Shown here: positions 47,875 through 59,283 of the stretch, in pieces
Layout: each line of letters begins with the position of its first letter
Numbering within the stretch: the stretch's first letter is position 1
Assembly (NCBI GenBank): GCA_029953675.1
Contig: JAMWBK010000001.1
Location: 2,108,001-2,172,000 of the forward strand
Reading direction: 5' to 3'
Length of the DNA: 64,000 bases
Origin: Rhodosorus marinus CCMP1338
Lineage: Eukaryota; Plantae; Rhodophyta
Translations under genes and position numbers: made by a program
The notes under the pieces: generated by a model
The model's input: the letters and a program-made list of their open reading frames with translations, nothing else
What the model was told of the DNA's origin: nothing
Databases searched by the model: none

Positions 47875-49066
47875 ATGGCTAGGCCTGGATTCATTGGGAA
47901 TTTGGGTAAAGGATTTGGTATAGGTGGAGGTGGTGGTGGTGGAGGTGTGAGGTGTGGGAGGAATAATAACAATCGATGGGGAGAGTTTGAGGGGTTTTCG
48001 AAGGCGCTTATACCGAGCGTCGTTGCATCGGGGAGACCCAGCTTTGATGGTTATGTGGGAGAGGATGTGGTTGGGGAAAGGACTGCGTTTGTAACTCAGT
48101 ACAATAGTCCGGCTTTTGTTAATAATAGTGGGCGGCCGGTACGTCTTGGAATGGACTTTCCTGCGGCCGATAGGCGGTTTCTTTCGATGCGCAAGTCACT
48201 GACTTCTGGAGTTCTCTTTTGTCTGTTCTTGTTTTGGGCTCGCACAGGTTGTGGTTATACTTTCTTGGATGGGCGCAAACCGGAAGAACATTGAGAAGTA
48301 CACAGAGTTTTATAGAGAACGAGGATGCGACGTATACTTCTTCTTGAACAATGTTGGGCACGCTATCATACCCATCGAGTCACGGAGACAGGCTCATCGC
48401 GTGATGGAGACGCTTTCATCGATACCGCAAAACCGTCCTGTCTTTGTACATGCGTTCAGTATTGGGACTGGCGTCTACGGCTATGTCGTCGATATGATGC
48501 GCAACAAGGAAGAACAATTTAAGCATGTTGCTGGCGTGATATATGACTCCGGCCCGGCCATGATTTTTCCTTCAGACGTTGCGAAAGGACTTCACCTCGT
48601 CTGCCCCACCATCTCGAAGAAGGTGTGGTCAGTTTTTGCAAAGGCTTTCTTCACTGTCACGCAAGCCCGGAAGAACTTTCGAGTTGCTGAGGACGCCCTT
48701 GCCGAATCTCAACTAGCCCACGCGCCACAGCTCTACGTCTATTCCAAGGACGACACGGTAAGGCAACCAACTCACTTAATTACCCCTTCGGTGATCCAGC
48801 ATGGCTAACGCGCAGTCGACGGCACCCCACCAACGCAGATCATAGACGAGGTCCACACCTCCATTGGTCACTTCATTGATCAGAACCGCCGCCGAGGCAT
48901 TGAATGCTTCAGCAAGGTGTTTGAAAAGTCCAAGCACGTTATGCATCTACGCTACCACCCGGATGAGTACATGGAAAATCTTGGAGGGTTCTTGCAAAGA
49001 TGTTTGGAGAGACACGATCGAAGCTTTATCGCAGGCGAGCAATCGGCTCCTGCGGCAGCCCATTGA
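47875..49066 (+). CDS. TMEM53/DUF829-family alpha/beta-hydrolase-fold protein
   Basis: Spliced SGRP|VVVILSWMGANRKNIEKY, VFVHAFSIG, GVIYDSGPA, PQLYVYSKDD, FEKSKHVMHLRYHPDEY; three exons; Gly-rich transit-like N-terminus. Confidence 0.85.
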
Positions 49067-50127: not shown

Positions 50128-51167
50128 CTATTCAGATTCCAGAGATGGTTCGAAGAACGTGTACACGGCAAAGACCTCGAAAAGAACGCCGGCGATGATC
50201 GCAACCGTTCGCTCGGAGATTCTCGTTGACACGAACGCTGCTCCGAGGACCGCGACGATGCTGCAGATTACGTTCGCAGCGGAGGCGCCCATGAACACAA
50301 CCGCGGTGTTTCCTGAGTACAAGAAAATAAGCAGAACAATAGATCGGGTTAGCGGGCCATCCAGATTCTTTCAAAAGGCCAGCGCTATAGCTCACCAGAC
50401 GCTGCGAGAGCCATAGTAGCAATCATGCTTCTGTCCAACCATTCCGCTACGAAGATGAGCGAAGAAGTCTTTGCCATGATCGGACCGGATCCCTCCGCAG
50501 TGACTCCGGACACAAGATCCTTGGCGTCTTCAACCTCGCCACCTATTCCAGGCTTGTCAGGTAGTTCACGGGACTGAACCAGCATCTGGATGCCGAAGAA
50601 CGCAAACAGGATAATAGACGCGACCCAGGTTACTTTCGGGTCGAGAAACTGTCCAATTTGACCCAGAAAGCAGGCGATTACAGTCATCGTAGTTAGTGCT
50701 ACCAGTGCCCCGATGAACACCAGCAGCGGGTTGTATCTCATCGCCATTAAAGCAGTCGCGAACATGCTCTTGTCACCGAACTGGGACAAGAAAACCACTC
50801 CAAACGCGCCCGTGAAGGACCGCCAAGGTCCAGCGGCCACCGTCAAGGCCGCAGGTGAACTCGCCATCGCTAAAAGGGCGGGCATCGCGATGCTCATTTT
50901 GGCGAGTTTAAACATCGCCCCATGCCTCGTCCTGAAGGACGCCGATCTCTTCGCGATCCTCGACAGCACCTCCACCAACTTTCTCAGTGTTTCCCGCACC
51001 TTAGGTCCCCGCGGCTGCACCACCTCCGGAGCGGTCGTGCTCTCCTCGCGTCTAGTCAGGGCCATTCGGATCGGCGCCGCCGCCCTCCGAGTACATCGTG
51101 CCTCCCTCGCACGTCCATGAACCGACTTCAATCCTCCGAGAGCGGACACAAACCCAGGTTCAGCCAT
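50128..51167 (-). CDS. GDT1/TMEM165/PAM71 (UPF0016) cation transporter, putative plastid-targeted, with altered signature motifs
   Basis: join(51167..~50394,~50317..50128). Two UPF0016 repeats: FGVVFLSQFGDKSMFATALMA and LIFVAEWLDRSMIATMALA; N-terminus MAEPGFV. Confidence 0.88.
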
Positions 51168-53187: not shown

Positions 53188-55443
53188 ATGTCGAAGTTAG
53201 CCTTCGAAGGGATTCTATCTGGCCCCGTTGCTGGCTATGTCGCTGCATGTAAAGATCTGGGAGGTCTCTTGGAGAAGCAGGCCGGATTTGTCGAGCAAGC
53301 GTTCAAGGAGGAGATGGCTTTTTTGAACAAGGCTTCTGCAATGGCTAAACCCAGCGACGATGAGTTTCAGGCGATGCTCGCTGTGATTGGTGGTGAGATG
53401 GGGAAAGTTGCCTCTGTAACGTCGGAAGCAGCTCCTAGAAGTCCTCTGGAGAACCATTTGACGGCGGTGTCCGAGTCGATCGGAGCTCTGGGCTGGGTAG
53501 CCGTTGACCCGAAACCTGTTCCGTACATAGGAGATATGGAACAGGCTGGTGAGTTCTACCTTTCCAAGATCTTGATGCAGTACAAGAAGACGGAAGAATT
53601 TGGCAAGCATGAACGGTTTGCCAAGTCGCTTCGGCAGCTTTGCGCGGCATTGAAAGCGTACGTGAAGGAGTACCACACAACGAGCCTACAATGGAACGCG
53701 GTGTCACGGAAGACGGTGAGGGGACCGGCATCCACGGTTGTTGAGGAGCAACCTTCGGGAGTTGACGAACTATCGTCTTTTGAGGAGATCATATCCGGAC
53801 CTCTTGCCAGCTATGTCGCTGCGTGTAAAGATCTGGGAGATCTAGTGGAGAAACAGGCCGGATTTGTGTCGGATGTGTTCAAGGAGGAGTTGACTTTTCT
53901 GACCAAGGTCTCTGCAATGGCTAAACCTAGCGACGATGAGTTTCAGGCGATGCTCGCTGTGATTGGTGGTGAGATGGGGAAAGTTGCCTCTGTAACGTCG
54001 GAAGCAGCTCCTAGAAGTCCTCTGGAGAACCATTTGACGGCGGTGTCCGAGTCGATCGGAGCTCTGGGCTGGGTAGCCGTTGACTCGAAACCTGTTCCGT
54101 ACATAGGAGATATGGAACAGGCTGGTGAGTTCTACCTTTCCAAGATCTTGATGCAGTACAAGAAGACGGAAGAATTTGGCAAGCATGAACGGTTTGTCAA
54201 GTCGCTTCGGGAGCTTTGTGCTGCATTGAAAGCCTACGTGAAGGAGTACCACACGACCAGCTTGCAATGGAATACTGCGTCACGGAAGACGGTGAGGGGA
54301 CCGGCATCCACGGTTGTTGAGGAGCAACCTTCGGGAGTTGACGAACTATCGTCTTTTGAGGAGATCATATCCGGACCTCTTGCCAGCTATGTCGCTGCGT
54401 GTAAAGATCTGGGAGATCTAGTGGAGAAACAGGCCGGATTTGTGTCGGATGTGTTCAAGGAGGAGTTGACTTTTCTGACCAAGGTCTCTGCAATGGCTAA
54501 ACCTAGCGACGATGAGTTTCAGGCGATGCTCGCTGTGATTGGTGGTGAGATGGGGACAGTTGCCTCTGTAACGTCGGAAGCAGCTCCTAGAAGTCCTCTG
54601 GAGAACCATTTGACGGCGGTGTCCGAGTCGATCGGAGCTCTGGGCTGGGTAGGCGTTGACTCGAAACCTGTTCCGTACATAGGAGATATGGAACAGGCTG
54701 GTGAGTTCTACCTTTCCAAGATCTTGATGCAGTACAAGAAGACGGAAGAATTTGGCAAGCATGAACGGTTTGTCAAGTCGCTTCGGGAGCTTTGTGCTGC
54801 ATTGAAAGCCTACGTGAAGGAGTACCACACGACCAGCTTGCAATGGAATACTGCGTCACGGAAGACGGTGAAGGGATCAGCATCCGCTGTGGTTGAGGAG
54901 GAATCGTCCGGGACAGATCCACTTTCGTCTTTTGAAGCGGTCTTATCCGGTTCGGTCGAAGAATATAGCAAAGCGGCCAAGGAACTAGGGGGCCTTGTCG
55001 AAGAACAGTCTACCTTCTTCGTCGCCGCACTGAAAGAGGAGTTCAAGCTGTTGCAAAATGCGTCGAAGATGGCCAAGCCCGGTGCGGACGCGTTTCAGGC
55101 AATGTTAACCCCAATTGCGGAAAACATGGGGAAGGTCGGCGAGATCGCTTCTCAGGCTCCACCGCGGGACCCGTTCCAGAATCACCTCAACGCCCTGTCA
55201 GAGTCAGTAGGGGCTCTGGGTTGGGTTGCGGTGGATTCTACGCCGGTCCCCTTCATCGCGGATATGGCAGCTGCTGGTGAGTTCTACATATCCAAACTGC
55301 TGATGGAGTACAAGAAGAAGGATGACTTCGCAAAACATGAGGCGTTTAGCAAGAATTTGAAGGCTGTGTATGCAGATCTGAAGAAGTATGTGAAGAAGTA
55401 TCACACAACACAGCTTTCCTGGAACTATGCTAGTTCCTCCTAA
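53188..55443 (+). CDS. Protein of four tandem CAP N-terminal helical-folded domains (CAP_N x4), 751 aa, intronless
   Basis: Each repeat carries CAP/Srv2 HFD motifs: GP(V/L)AxY..., NHLxAxSESxGALGWV, P(V)P(Y/F)I, EFY, YVKxYHTTxLxWN. No RLE oligomerisation helix, poly-Pro, WH2 or C-terminal CARP segment. Confidence 0.93.
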   Translation: MSKLAFEGILSGPVAGYVAACKDLGGLLEKQAGFVEQAFKEEMAFLNKASAMAKPSDDEFQAMLAVIGGEMGKVASVTSEAAPRSPLENHLTAVSESIGALGWVAVDPKPVPYIGDMEQAGEFYLSKILMQYKKTEEFGKHERFAKSLRQLCAALKAYVKEYHTTSLQWNAVSRKTVRGPASTVVEEQPSGVDELSSFEEIISGPLASYVAACKDLGDLVEKQAGFVSDVFKEELTFLTKVSAMAKPSDDEFQAMLAVIGGEMGKVASVTSEAAPRSPLENHLTAVSESIGALGWVAVDSKPVPYIGDMEQAGEFYLSKILMQYKKTEEFGKHERFVKSLRELCAALKAYVKEYHTTSLQWNTASRKTVRGPASTVVEEQPSGVDELSSFEEIISGPLASYVAACKDLGDLVEKQAGFVSDVFKEELTFLTKVSAMAKPSDDEFQAMLAVIGGEMGTVASVTSEAAPRSPLENHLTAVSESIGALGWVGVDSKPVPYIGDMEQAGEFYLSKILMQYKKTEEFGKHERFVKSLRELCAALKAYVKEYHTTSLQWNTASRKTVKGSASAVVEEESSGTDPLSSFEAVLSGSVEEYSKAAKELGGLVEEQSTFFVAALKEEFKLLQNASKMAKPGADAFQAMLTPIAENMGKVGEIASQAPPRDPFQNHLNALSESVGALGWVAVDSTPVPFIADMAAAGEFYISKLLMEYKKKDDFAKHEAFSKNLKAVYADLKKYVKKYHTTQLSWNYASSS
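53197..55440 (+). repeat. 576-bp coding tandem repeat, about 4 copies
   Basis: Equivalent codons at 53197, 53773, 54349, 54925. Copies 2 and 3 are nearly identical, copy 1 is slightly more diverged, copy 4 is clearly diverged. Confidence 0.97.
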
Positions 55444-56148: not shown

Positions 56149-58393
56149 CTAGGCATCGTAAACCGGCCCGGGAATCGGTTTGATCATCGACGCCTGGGTT
56201 TCAAACTCTTTCACTATCCTTTCCACAGTATCGAGTGACTTATTCCAGAAGGCATCCTCTCCGATATCCTCGTTGAGATGTGCGAGGACGAGCTCCTCTG
56301 TGTCGAGCTTTCCCGTATCTCTTAGCAATGCTTTGTAAGCGTCAAAGAACTTGTCGCCGAGCCTCTCCCTCTGATTGTACACTCCAAGCGCAAGGAGCCA
56401 GCCAAACGTATACGGGAAGTTGTAAAAGCAAACCCCAGTGATGTAGAAATGGAGTTTAGACTGCCAGAAGAAAGGCTGAACTGTCGCGAGTGAATCCTTG
56501 TACTGATCAGTCCACGCCTGCTCCATCAAGCTGCTTAGCTCAGATGGTGTCAGCGACTGCTTCTCCCTCTGTATGTGCAGCTGCTCCTCGAACCTGAACC
56601 GTGCCGGAATATTGAGCAAAAACGCGCTCGCGTTCTCACATGCTGCCCAGAGGATGCGCAGTCTCTCCAGTTCATTGGTCGTCCTGTTCAGAAGCGCGCC
56701 GCTCACGACAGTCTCAAAGAAAATCGATGCCGTCTCGGCAACGTTCATCCCGAGATAAGTCTCTGGTACTGCAAGTTCTCTCATGGTCCAAGAATGGAAG
56801 GCGTGGCCCTACAAAGTAATCGTTGTGTGGAGACGAAAGAACCCGCATTGACAACCGAGTTGTTAGCAGAATCCAGACCGCGTGCATAGTCCTGACATCC
56901 ATGCAAATGCAAGCTAATCCTCTATTTCAAGGGTCTGTTGAATTAGGGTACTGCGTATGGGCAACTTACGAGTTCGTGGGCAAGGGTCAGGACGTGAGCA
57001 GCTCCACCATTGTAGTCACTCAAATACACCTGGGGTACCAGTTGCAAGCAGAACGTTGTGTGAGCTCCAGCTATTAGAGTGCTGGCGCAGCTGGGCATGC
57101 CGGCTAGCGGGAGTCAAACGCTTGCATGGAGAAGCTTACCCTTGGAGTTCTTGACTTTGAAAACTCGGTCTGATATGCACCGGGAACTTTCTGGCTCGCC
57201 TTTCTGGCCTCAATCCACCCATTGTCAGCCATAAGCTGAACGAAATCGCCCATTTCTTGGTCAATGCTGCCGACCGACTCTTTGATAAGTTGCACTGCCT
57301 CCTCGAACGTGTACCGCCCTTCTATTTCTTGGTTTTCGGCAATTTCAGCCGGCAGGGGAGCGAATAGATCCCACGCGTCCAGCTTCTGCTTACCCAACAA
57401 TTTTGCCTTTGTTCGGAGCACTCTCCTGGCCAGTTCAGATCTGTCCTCGACCACTCTAAGCATCGTGTCGAGTGTCTTCTTGGTCATTCTATTCTGATGC
57501 AGCGGCGTATCAAGGAAGTGTAGACCACGTCGTTTGTACATGTCCAGTCTCCATCCGACCATAGAGTTTAGAGCAGCAGCGCACGACTCTTCGTGGACGG
57601 CCCATGAGTCACGAATCCCTTCGAAAGCAGACCTTCGGACGGCCTCAGAGGGATTGTCAAGATACCCTGCAGCAGTTGCCAAACCAACTTTTTCCTTCGA
57701 TCCGTCGGCTAAAGTGATATCACACTTGATCGTGCCAGAAATTGTGGAATACATTGTTCCCCAGGAGGAGTGGCCGTTGACGCTCAAAGTTGTATACAGT
57801 TTCTCCTCCTGAAGGCTGAGCCTGGAATCCCGTAGTTTTCTCTGACGCCGGATGTGGGCGGCCTCCGCTTTGGTTTCATTGTTCGCCGACAGAAACTCAG
57901 AGACCACGTCATCGGCACAACGCATGAGGAACAAATCCTTACTGAGAGTGACTTCACCAAGCCTTGCCGCCACCTCCTGAACCTCCAGGCTCTTCTTCCT
58001 CGCATCGATATTTGACCCATCCACGCTCTTCTCACAGCTCGAGTAAACGCCAACGTTCCTCAGAAGGACCTCTGCCTCGCTCTTAAGCTTTGAGCTTAAC
58101 GTCAGAGCATCCAAGACGCCATTAACCTGACACTCATTTACGCTCAACCCCTCGCAGTTATCCAAATATCCACTTATGGCATTCTCCACGCCCCCGATCT
58201 CCTTCACGAGGTCCCGCACCCTATCCAGATCAGACTTCAGCTCAACACTCTCAAGCGATGGATACTCAGAGCTCAAAACCCATGATGGTCCGCCTTCCAC
58301 TACCCTCTCCGCAAGAACAGAACGACAAGTACCAGCAGCACATCGAGAGTTCCCAGATACACCCCGAACCGTGCTCAAAATAAACCCAATCAT
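56149..58393 (-). CDS. pepF: Oligoendopeptidase F (peptidase M3B), putative organelle-targeted
   Basis: PSWVLSSEYPS, LSVNGHSSWGTMY, NGWIEA...KVPGAYQT...RTPR|VYLSDY...TLAHEL|GHAFH (HEXXH), AETASIFFE, KLHFY...FYNFPYTFG; three exons. Start at 58393 (MIGF) or 58450. Confidence 0.92.
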
Positions 58394-59283
58394 GACAACA
58401 CTTCCACTATAGCTCCTTTTCGCCCTTCCAAAGTGGCTACTTGTGAACATACTTTGCCGACGAAAAAAAGAAAACAACAGCCTTTTCAACCTCAACCTCA
58501 ATGAGACCTACTCAAAGCCAAAATCATAACTCCCTCCCTCCCCTCTCGTTGTCAAGAGGTTTACATGCTCCGCTTTCCTATAGTGAAGATGAGAAGGGAA
58601 GCACAACAGTTTCCAATCCTTCTCTTTGGGACTCCAAATCCTCATTCGACGAAGAAGGAAAACTGAATTGAAGAGACCATGAAGACCAGTGCTCTGTTGT
58701 TTTGCCGTTGTGGTGATGCCTCCTACTCGTGAAAGGTGGACAGAGAAAGATTAGAGATTTTGTCCGGACGGTATCGGCAGTACGGCCGAATGCTAATGAT
58801 TCGCATCAGAAATTGATCCATTCGCAAAGTCGGATTGAGCACCGGCTTCAATGCTGGTCGCAAGCTAGCCAGTTTTATTATGAGTTATACGATTCCACTA
58901 TCCTATGCCAGTCGTGAACTGCATGGTATGCACAGGACAGCCTTTCGTCCTAGCCCTTGATTCTCTCCGTCGCCCGTTGTAGCTTATGCCTGCTGGGACG
59001 GCACGGTAGATCGCGCTCATTGTTTTTTTCTACAACCCACGCCATCAGGGATCATCTGTTGCCAGCTTGCGTCCCAGTCACTCCACTGCCTCATCATCGT
59101 TTTGTCCAGACCATGAGGATGTCATCGTTGAGGGCAGTCGGGTAAGGGATTTTCTTGTGCTTACTAGACAGCAAGCCGTCCTGGGAGCCGGAGCGCGTAT
59201 CTCGTTCGTTGCAACAAAACCAGGCGAAAAAAATGCGCCAGAAATCCGTCCGAGCAGCAAACTCCGAGCCATTAGAGAACGGT

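Follow-up and report, generated by a model that had tools for sequence, protein, structure and literature searches.

What could a CAP/Srv2-like protein do that consists of nothing but four N-terminal helical-folded domains (HFDs) joined head to tail in one chain? The question is raised by a gene of the red alga Rhodosorus marinus, found within the 64-kb stretch of DNA analysed here (the window), and it concerns a lineage already known for its pared-down actin toolkit, whose members, to our knowledge, need neither Arp2/3 nor myosin II for crawling and for organising their actin. In published descriptions, CAP counts among the few regulators of actin that occur in all eukaryotes and has a fixed two-half design, while its assembly as a tetramer or a hexamer and the need for oligomerisation are still debated (PMC7543520, PMC13048244).

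The gene is an intronless ORF of 751 aa on the forward strand (53188-55443), running from an ATG at 53188 to a TAA at 55441-55443, with an in-frame stop 22 codons upstream of the ATG, and the public annotation of GCA_029953675.1 holds the identical single-exon, 751-aa gene call. Repeat copies of two families (D1 and D2) are spaced by exactly 576 nt, i.e., 192 aa, as revealed by an exact-repeat search; this was used in place of Tandem Repeats Finder, which left the array blank because its period is limited to a maximum of 500. Units 1-3 share 84–96% protein identity with each other, units 2 and 3 being 97% identical in nucleotides, and about 56% with unit 4. A chance pattern cannot account for the ORF, the period and the domain content. 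Antisense ORFs of 141–153 aa within the array are by-products of the repeat and were rejected as genes. The features of the locus are the following:

53188-55443, forward strand: poly-HFD CAP-like protein, complete intronless ORF (751 aa plus TAA)
53188-53703, forward strand: HFD unit 1 (aa 1-172), six-helix bundle according to Pfam CAP_N and AlphaFold (HMM envelope 1-176; AlphaFold helices H2-162, pLDDT about 90 or higher)
53704-53760, forward strand: linker 1 (aa 173-191), predicted to be disordered (pLDDT <50), sequence SRKTVRGPASTVVEEQPSG
53761-54285, forward strand: HFD unit 2 (aa 192-366), according to Pfam CAP_N, HMM envelope and AlphaFold
54286-54336, forward strand: linker 2 (aa 367-383), pLDDT <50
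54337-54861, forward strand: HFD unit 3 (aa 384-558), according to Pfam CAP_N, HMM envelope and AlphaFold
54862-54912, forward strand: linker 3 (aa 559-575), pLDDT <50
54913-55440, forward strand: HFD unit 4 (aa 576-751), divergent terminal unit (strongest Pfam stretch 582-743; match to 6rsw_C with E=5.9e-29)
53554-53559, 54130-54135, 54706-54711 and 55282-55287, forward strand: Phe-Tyr actin-contact pairs of units 1-4, assigned by alignment to F162/Y163 of mouse CAP1
53452-53499, 54028-54075, 54604-54651 and 55180-55227, forward strand: NHLxAxSESxGALGWV helix motif of units 1-4, within the actin-facing helices
53338-53607, forward strand: gene-conversion tract in unit 1 (counterparts 53914-54183 and 54490-54759)

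In a sliding-window comparison, the nucleotide identity of unit 1 with units 2 and 3 is 97–100% within the gene-conversion tract and 58–92% in the flanks of the unit. With a dN/dS of 0.28–0.30 for unit 1 against units 2 and 3, the HFD units are under purifying selection.

Compared with canonical CAP/Srv2 (human and mouse CAP1, yeast Srv2), the window protein has the HFD fold of the N-CAP half in common, at about 34–40% identity, as well as the Phe-Tyr pair and the NHL...ALGWV helix. Pfam CAP_N (PF21938) matches it with E=1.9e-173 in four stretches, each spanning nearly the whole 159-position model, and every unit contains a GEFY motif (aa 121-124, 313-316, 505-508 and 697-700), which aligns with the MFY of human and mouse CAP1. 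Its four HFDs also equal the number per particle in the human CAP tetramer. However, the canonical multimer is built by a coiled coil, whereas here covalent repeats with linkers of about 19 aa take its place, and the oligomerisation domain, the Pro-rich region, WH2 and CARP, i.e., also the nucleotide-exchange half, are all missing. In fact, Pfam gave no match to CAP_C (PF08603) in the 751-aa protein, and a six-frame search of the 64-kb window found none either (best E=2.6). Neither a PPP run nor a WH2-like motif (L[KR][KRH][VAT], e.g., LKHV or LKKV) occurs in the protein; both are present in the canonical controls P0035 and P0061, and the WH2-like motif in P0195. An RLE coiled coil is absent and has no space, since residue 2 is already the start of the first HFD, while the canonical controls have 37–100 residues with RLE motifs ahead of the HFD. 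Further weak Pfam matches (Dioxygenase_N, NAGLU_N, Phasin_2, Alpha_kinase and others), mostly without an individually significant stretch, are noise that recurs because the sequence itself is repeated.

Splicing to a downstream CAP_C exon, named beforehand as an outcome speaking against the original prediction for this locus, is contradicted by the spliced cDNA of a Rhodosorus sister strain. This cDNA follows the gene co-linearly past the stop and through the 3'UTR, which leaves no splice to a CAP_C exon, and it shows that the mRNA is expressed and unspliced in that strain. The sister-strain cDNA and proteins start with MSKLA and end with ASSS and the stop, as in the window gene, and the last unit of the protein is the ortholog of window unit 4.

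The predicted structure gives further hints on how the units are arranged. AlphaFold models four confident six-helix bundles (mean pLDDT 86.9, pTM 0.36), separated by three low-confidence segments of 17–19 residues, all with pLDDT <50. In view of this pTM and the low linker scores despite the high mean, the domains would behave as independent beads on a string. The predicted HFD superimposes on the actin-bound mouse HFD 6rsw_C with a TM score of 0.94 and an rmsd of 1.6 Å, and it also matches the HFDs at filament pointed ends in 9q7o and 9y9j. Throughout red-algal arrays, the linkers have a median length of 19 aa (IQR 18–23, n=115), and their length is under tight constraint. Thus far, the original prediction was borne out in its description of the protein: the intronless ORF and the exact period by the ORF and exact-repeat analyses, the four complete HFDs with one Phe-Tyr pair each by Pfam and the GEFY motif in all four units, the linkers of about 20 aa by the AlphaFold segments, and the absence of RLE coiled coil, poly-Pro, WH2 and CARP by Pfam, motif scans and the position of the first HFD. 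The supposed algal host proved to be a red alga that encodes a CAP relative of tandem HFDs only.

Mutation of F162/Y163 in mouse CAP1 abolishes binding to actin and cofilin-actin (PMC6876575). This pair is FY in all four window units, FY or FF is present in 119 out of the 133 units from red algae, and H130, E136, L141, G142, W143 and V144 (human numbering) are likewise common to canonical and red-algal HFDs. Moreover, the actin-facing segment, human P107-Y172 as defined in PMC13048244, varies least within the units of red algae (entropy 1.63 against 1.96, p=0.009); when red-algal HFDs are compared with canonical ones, identity is no higher in this segment than elsewhere (p=0.41). Other canonical residues are replaced. 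Arg118 and Glu119, which in the mouse complex are salt-bridged to E57/K50 of actin and are conserved in 78% (R) and 72% (E) of canonical HFDs, correspond to T-S in units 1-3 and A-S in unit 4, in a loop whose alignment is less certain than that of the helices. Near-invariant canonical residues in the actin-facing helices are altered in the red-algal clade as well (R123 to P, N166 to D or S, K170 to M), and so is the near-invariant G204. Because actin-facing canonical residues differ in this clade, the binding mode or the partner could have shifted.

The architecture is not confined to Rhodosorus. HFD-only arrays occur in named matches of five red-algal classes, complete proteins having 4–7 units; counting partial proteins, members of the red-algal clade have 3–7 units, and PF08603 is found in none of them. 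In two trees, the red-algal HFD units are monophyletic with the window units inside (support 100/99 and 100/100). Judging from these sequences, HFD-only arrays are the norm across these five classes. Some homologues carry extras, i.e., a C-terminal PPxxxxF tail or, in florideophytes, an HFD-like unit at the N-terminus that is degenerate. Tandem HFD arrays were also found in amoebozoans, a nucleariid, a breviate and a diplonemid, with four HFDs in Nolandella, three each in Rhizamoeba and Lithocolla and two in Pygsuia, while tandem HFDs followed by CAP_C occur in P0195 of Namystynia (four HFDs), in P0334 (three HFDs) and in metagenomic proteins (two to three HFDs). Since the units of each lineage cluster together and outside the red-algal clade (100/100), these arrays have independent origins. 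Like those of red algae, these uncharacterised arrays are head-to-tail HFDs lacking the coiled coil when complete and of at least three units, but their origins are separate and some keep the CARP half. Across complete arrays of at least three HFDs, the first HFD begins at median residue 4 and an oligomerisation domain is present in none (n=37), compared with median residue 50 for the HFD of single-HFD CAPs, and the coiled coil is missing even from the CARP-retaining P0195 and P0334. Most 2-HFD proteins keep an RLE-type coiled coil, usually duplicated along with the HFD.

On one point the original prediction, which saw the gene as notable in an alga with a reduced actin toolkit, has to be corrected, as the design is no peculiarity of one alga; it is the norm of the red-algal classes with named matches and recurs outside red algae. 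Its concern that this might be the described norm of the lineage was justified with regard to the norm; a published description of an HFD-only tandem CAP architecture was not found in the literature searched. The HFD-only tandem CAP is thus a conserved and, apparently, undescribed red-algal design.

What such a chain may do is suggested by studies on isolated HFDs. The HFD is the smallest unit capable of depolymerisation, but as a monomer it is needed at a >20-fold higher concentration, which is rescued by GST dimerisation (PMC6876575), and depolymerising activity increases in the order monomer, dimer, trimer, tetramer (PMC13048244). In engineered HFD/N-CAP multimers, multimerisation by itself raises depolymerising activity (PMC6876575, PMC7543520, PMC13048244). 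These constructs, the GST-dimerised HFD of Kotila et al. (2019) and the N-CAP chimeras of Purde et al. (2019; cited in PMC13048244 and PMC7543520), which carry dimer, trimer or tetramer domains, are likewise based on non-native tethering of HFDs, but they are laboratory proteins joined at one end, whereas the window protein is a natural head-to-tail chain; the literature covered cites no natural counterpart. Furthermore, two HFDs engage the two terminal filament subunits, and of the four arms of human CAP, a tetramer, two are engaged, another is recycling and the last is poised (PMC13048244).

On balance, we lean slightly towards the poly-HFD CAP being a covalent equivalent of the tetrameric N-CAP half that depolymerises pointed ends. 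By analogy with canonical CAP, we infer that it binds actin and cofilin-actin and acts processively at the pointed end. A neighbouring pair of HFDs would dock onto the last two subunits of a filament decorated with cofilin, where the second HFD would clash with the terminal subunit, so that this subunit would be pushed off together with its cofilin and HFD. Docking of this kind presumes that a 19-residue linker, roughly 60–65 Å long at full extension, can bridge HFDs on adjacent subunits. The remaining tethered HFDs could hold the protein at the end and offer the next binding module, providing avidity and processivity, while the released ADP-actin would not be recharged by the poly-HFD protein. 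As the C-terminal half is absent, the released monomer would not be stripped of HFD and cofilin in cis, and sequestration could win over turnover. Taken together, the published effect of HFD multimerisation and the loss of the coiled coil in arrays support the original proposal that tandem fusion replaces oligomerisation, which gained comparative backing from arrays of at least three HFDs without a coiled coil, two of them with CARP. The covalent chain probably replaces CAP self-assembly in red algae.

The natural four-HFD chain, its 4–7-unit relatives and the independent arrays amount to an evolutionary experiment on CAP oligomerisation, implying that several tethered HFDs matter and the coiled coil itself does not, and they represent ready-made constructs with defined valency. 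They also suggest that red-algal actin turnover is run by an N-CAP-only factor, which makes the question of ADP-actin recharging in red algae concrete and testable. Rather tentatively, red algae could have permanently swapped the bipartite CAP for a covalent HFD chain, losing the nucleotide-exchange half, with HFD concatenation being convergent across eukaryotes. If true, the natural copy numbers of 4–7 would tell how many arms are required to depolymerise pointed ends processively.

An option that we consider possible, albeit doubtful, is a CAP split over two genes, in which the poly-HFD protein provides the N-CAP activity and a separately encoded WH2/CARP protein recharges ADP-actin in trans. 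Such a partner would be in line with the view that dissociated subunits need C-CAP to be freed from HFD and cofilin (PMC13048244). According to the account of apicomplexan CAP in PMC6785269 (citing Hliscs et al., 2010), a lineage-wide natural cut to one CAP half is likewise viable there, as the mirror image: apicomplexans keep the CARP half only, whereas red algae keep and multiply the HFD only. However, CARP-coding capacity is absent from the 64-kb window, and none of the red-algal poly-HFD matches contains PF08603. A CARP-profile search among short proteins gave 1,068 matches, and the best 120 of these 1,068 are animal, fungal or without organism name; the named CARP-only complete ORFs examined are opisthokont or, in one case, from a non-red-algal protist (Lentomonas). 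The two-gene arrangement refines the covalent N-CAP explanation and does not exclude it, its alternative being the outright loss of the red-algal CARP half.

The actin-binding surface of the HFDs could also serve a multivalent buffer, which would mainly sequester monomers of ADP-actin or cofilin-ADP-actin, as many as four, by their pointed faces and work as G-actin reservoir or pointed-end-blocking factor instead of depolymerase; we regard this as unlikely. Cofilin/ADP-G-actin is bound by the HFD with good affinity (PMC6876575), C-CAP for monomer release is absent in cis, and red algae, which possess actin and cofilin (C. merolae table, PMC7503314), have few other G-actin buffers because thymosin and capping protein are missing (C. 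merolae list, PMC7503314). Depolymerisation, however, uses the very same surface and is specifically boosted by multimerisation (PMC6876575, PMC13048244), and both the linker constraint and the link between arrays and coiled-coil loss fit cooperating neighbours better than independent traps.

Improbable, in our view, is a co-opted scaffold, in which the HFD fold would provide a helical spacer or a platform where a non-actin partner interacts, as could be read from the changes at R123, N166, K170, G204 and the R/E salt-bridge pair or from the homologue extras of unknown role (the degenerate N-terminal unit and the PPxxxxF tail). The F/Y residues essential for actin binding and the H130/E136/L141-V144 helix are nevertheless kept, the best-conserved segment comprises the actin-facing helices, and the same tandem arrays were built independently in CARP-retaining lineages, P0195 and P0334 being clearly still CAPs because CARP is retained.

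An assembly or annotation artefact, i.e., a wrong repeat number or a gene model cut short, is highly improbable: units 2 and 3 are indeed 97% identical in nucleotides, and such arrays collapse easily, as seen from an N-gap within the array in the short-read sister-strain scaffold and from a transcriptome-derived UniProt entry with two units only, but the R. marinus assembly is chromosome-level and based on ONT and PacBio HiFi reads (PMC10250338), the length of which far exceeds the 2.3-kb array, the four units are mutually distinguishable, three or more units are present in the sister strain, the spliced cDNA of which confirms start, stop and 3'UTR, and transcriptome relatives are complete ORFs of 4–6 units. 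A loss of the C-terminal PPxxxxF tail by frameshift, considered in view of LVPPKPS in the +1 frame past the stop, was set aside because both Rhodosorus strains end at the same ASSS and stop, and the downstream similarity reflects ordinary 3'UTR conservation.

The fold and the family of the window protein are ordinary; its architecture, four helical folded domains (HFDs) strung together in a single reading frame, is unusual and informative.

Genes and reading frames in the window
53188-55443, plus strand: poly-HFD CAP-like ORF, uninterrupted, 751 codons plus TAA
53215-54843, minus strand: repeated antisense ORFs of 141-153 aa inside the array, e.g., 53842-54267 and 54418-54843
56149-58501, minus strand: M3-family oligopeptidase gene, 676 aa in the public annotation, convergent, with a GT-AG intron of 106 nt at ~57031-57136
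47875-49066, plus strand: DUF829 protein gene, upstream neighbour
50128-51167, minus strand: GDT1-family (putative cation transporter) gene, upstream neighbour

An in-frame stop lies 22 codons 5' of the ATG, and direct-repeat analysis revealed repeat copies at an exact spacing of 576 nt, which Tandem Repeats Finder missed because its period limit was 500. This spacing and the single-exon gene call confirm the intronless 751-aa ORF with a 192-aa period of the original prediction. Units 1-3 are 84-96% identical in protein (units 2 and 3 share 97% nucleotide identity), and unit 4 is ~56% identical to the others. The proposed HMM scan for CAP_N versus CAP_C gave four full-length stretches of CAP_N (PF21938, helical folded domain; E=1.9e-173) and no CAP_C match in the protein (Pfam); each unit carries GEFY, aligned to MFY of mammalian CAP1, in line with the predicted four complete HFDs with a Phe-Tyr pair. 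The RLE coiled coil, poly-Pro, WH2 and CARP parts are likewise missing, as anticipated: neither a poly-Pro run nor a WH2-like motif was found in the protein, while canonical controls carry both, and the first HFD starts at residue 2, leaving no space for a coiled coil. Across the 64-kb window, a six-frame HMM scan turned up nothing able to code for a CARP-like domain (best E=2.6), nor any HFD beyond this gene. The antisense ORFs mirror the repeat units and were rejected as genes in their own right, and the DUF829 and GDT1 neighbours are without evident actin connection.

The exact protein is on record once, as a single-exon 751-aa gene on JAMWBK010000001.1 (3.8 Mb), located downstream of the minus-strand GDT1-family gene, at higher coordinates, and convergent with the minus-strand peptidase gene. 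The underlying GCA_029953675.1 is an ONT and PacBio HiFi chromosome-level assembly of Rhodosorus marinus CCMP1338, class Stylonematophyceae (PMC10250338), and reads of this type far exceed the 2.3-kb array in length. In a second Rhodosorus strain (87% nucleotide identity), the UniProt entry A0A7S3EAM7 (P0193) and a JGI contig (P0333, locus L002) start with MSKLA... and end with ...ASSS*, as in the window protein. L002 is without a 106-nt segment of the adjoining peptidase gene, bounded by GTAAGC...CAG on the peptidase coding strand, which marks a spliced-out intron (~57031-57136 in the window) and hence L002 as cDNA. Here, the CAP-like message and the genome are co-linear over the 5'UTR, the reading frame and, past the stop codon, ~170 nt of 3'UTR; thus, the transcript is not spliced to a downstream CAP_C exon, a possibility considered at the outset. 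The second strain has at least three units, and the run of Ns breaking the array in L002 as well as the mere two units of the UniProt entry illustrate short-read collapse of the repeat. The peptidase and CAP-like genes have 3' ends so close to each other that a single transcriptome contig came to contain both mRNAs.

A word-indexed search yielded about 30 multi-domain HFD-only proteins (489-1308 aa, 36-47% identity), several of them complete transcriptome ORFs, from Porphyridiophyceae (Porphyridium purpureum, P. aerugineum, Timspurckia, Erythrolobus), Compsopogonophyceae (Compsopogon), Bangiophyceae (Pyropia vietnamensis) and Florideophyceae (Gracilaria, Gracilariopsis, Agarophyton, Eucheuma). 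With Rhodosorus, five of the seven red-algal classes are covered. The suggested survey of repeat number gave 3-7 CAP_N units (4-7 in complete proteins), never with CAP_C in the array proteins found. The architecture is therefore not the peculiarity of one alga, as first supposed, but more general, occurring in five red-algal classes and in other eukaryotes. Public records auto-annotate the relatives as 'adenylyl cyclase-associated protein'. Full-text literature on red algae/Rhodophyta and the named genera, combined with cyclase-associated protein, Srv2 or HFD, gave no description of an HFD-only tandem architecture, an earlier mention being possible; the architecture is thus widely shared in the lineage, but we found no account of it as the norm. 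CAP is reported from all eukaryotes examined (PMC7543520), with the apicomplexan CARP-only CAP noted as an exception (PMC6785269); in contrast to the latter, the window protein is HFD-only.

All red-algal units form one clade apart from canonical HFDs (support 100/99 and 100/100 in two trees), with the four Rhodosorus units grouped as a clade of their own (99/95). In Porphyridiophyceae, orthology across genera is seen for the first, fourth and fifth units. Internal units of red-algal arrays have undergone expansion or homogenisation within lineages. In the window gene, unit 1 shares 97-100% nucleotide identity with units 2/3 at unit positions 151-420 and 58-92% in the flanks, a pattern that reads as a gene-conversion signature, and dN/dS between them is 0.28-0.30, indicating purifying selection. 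Red-algal arrays keep their linkers within a narrow length range (median 19 aa, IQR 18-23, n=115). Florideophyte homologues (P0002, P0008-P0014, P0019-P0027) carry an extra N-terminal segment of roughly 150 residues with a weak HFD-model match (12-19 bits), which is probably a degenerate additional HFD since it keeps an 'HHIxAxxxAxxAxxCV'-like remnant of the NHL...ALGWV helix. Seven proteins (P0015 of Compsopogon, P0016, P0017, P0018, P0025, P0030, P0031) end in a short conserved tail after the last HFD, WNxx(V/L)xPPxxxxF, which is absent from Rhodosorus, Porphyridiophyceae and florideophytes. In the window, MLVPPKPS is encoded in the +1 frame right past the stop (from 55427), a likeness that we judged coincidental rather than the trace of a lost tail, both Rhodosorus strains ending in ...ASSS*. 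The Pyropia vietnamensis record P0028 (773 aa) has the same protein sequence in units 2 and 3 and an internal truncation of its last unit at the junction '...AYITENKAAQQ...', suggestive of a very recent duplication or of a fault in the assembly or annotation of this record.

The AlphaFold2 model of the window protein, built on an alignment of 22 red-algal homologues, comprises four six-helix bundles (pLDDT ~90 or above; mean 86.9) separated by segments with pLDDT <50 (aa 173-191, 367-383 and 559-575). Together with a pTM of only 0.36, this means that the predicted domains are well defined while their mutual arrangement is not fixed. Foldseek matched them to the actin-bound mouse HFD 6rsw_C (TM 0.94, rmsd 1.6 A) and to the HFDs seen in structures of filament pointed ends (9q7o, 9y9j). 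The HFD, the minimal depolymerising unit, binds actin at its pointed face, between subdomains 2 and 4, and F162/Y163 mutation abolishes this binding; monomeric HFD requires a >20-fold higher concentration, rescued by GST dimerisation (PMC6876575). In cryo-EM, the first and second subunits of the pointed end carry one or two HFDs, bound via helices P107-Y172, the second HFD shifting the terminal cofilin-bound subunit by ~7.6 A; activity climbs from monomer to tetramer, the state of human CAP, and in the cycle put forward there, two arms are engaged while a third recycles and a fourth is poised (PMC13048244).

Given this mechanism, we favour with moderate confidence, as the best-supported reading, that the window protein could be a covalent N-CAP-like factor driving pointed-end depolymerisation together with cofilin. 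Consistently, the aromatic pair is kept (FY in 85, FF in 34 and MY in 11 of 133 red-algal units; FY in all four window units), as are H130, E136 and L141-V144, and the P107-Y172 segment is the least variable part of the red-algal units (entropy 1.63 vs 1.96, p=0.009). However, the R118/E119 salt-bridge pair is not conserved, the red-algal clade has other residues in place of the canonically near-invariant R123, N166, K170 and G204, and red-algal HFDs match canonical ones no better in the actin-facing segment than outside it (p=0.41). Furthermore, without C-CAP, recycling of the released HFD-cofilin-actin complex is not built into the protein. The protein might conceivably act as an actin monomer buffer instead, or as an HFD array with a changed binding partner. 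As to a separate red-algal CARP protein, a CARP-profile search showed none among the best 120 of 1,068 matches.

Outside the red algae, exhaustive searching of 1.84 billion representative proteins with unit 4 (phmmer) gave 808 matches, and every multi-stretch match examined further was a tandem-HFD protein. Some consist of HFDs only (four in Nolandella, three in Rhizamoeba and Lithocolla, two in Pygsuia), others add CAP_C (four HFDs in Namystynia karyoxenos, 2-3 in metagenomic proteins), and they group by lineage in the unit tree and hence have independent origins. Among proteins with an intact N-terminus, the start of the first HFD shifts with copy number: its median is residue 50 in single-HFD CAPs (n=130), 29 in 2-HFD proteins (n=33), most of which retain an RLE-type coiled coil, sometimes ahead of each HFD, and 4 in arrays of at least three HFDs (n=37), none with a coiled-coil motif. 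The few high values in the last group are florideophytes whose degenerate first unit is below threshold. As the CARP-bearing arrays of Namystynia (P0195) and P0334 (three HFDs and CAP_C) also begin directly with an HFD, oligomerisation domain and large tandem arrays are mutually exclusive in several independent lineages in the data examined. In the CARP-less 2-HFD proteins P0032 (Pygsuia), P0033/P0057 (Macrostomum), P0207 and P0211, an RLE-type segment precedes each HFD; coiled coil plus HFD as a duplicated module is a different way to higher valency than arrays of three or more HFDs. P0059, from the fish Thalassophryne amazonica ('KIAA0319-like', 1071 aa), is a gene model in which CAP_N is fused to PKD/fibronectin-type domains, most likely through a gene-prediction merger of adjoining genes.
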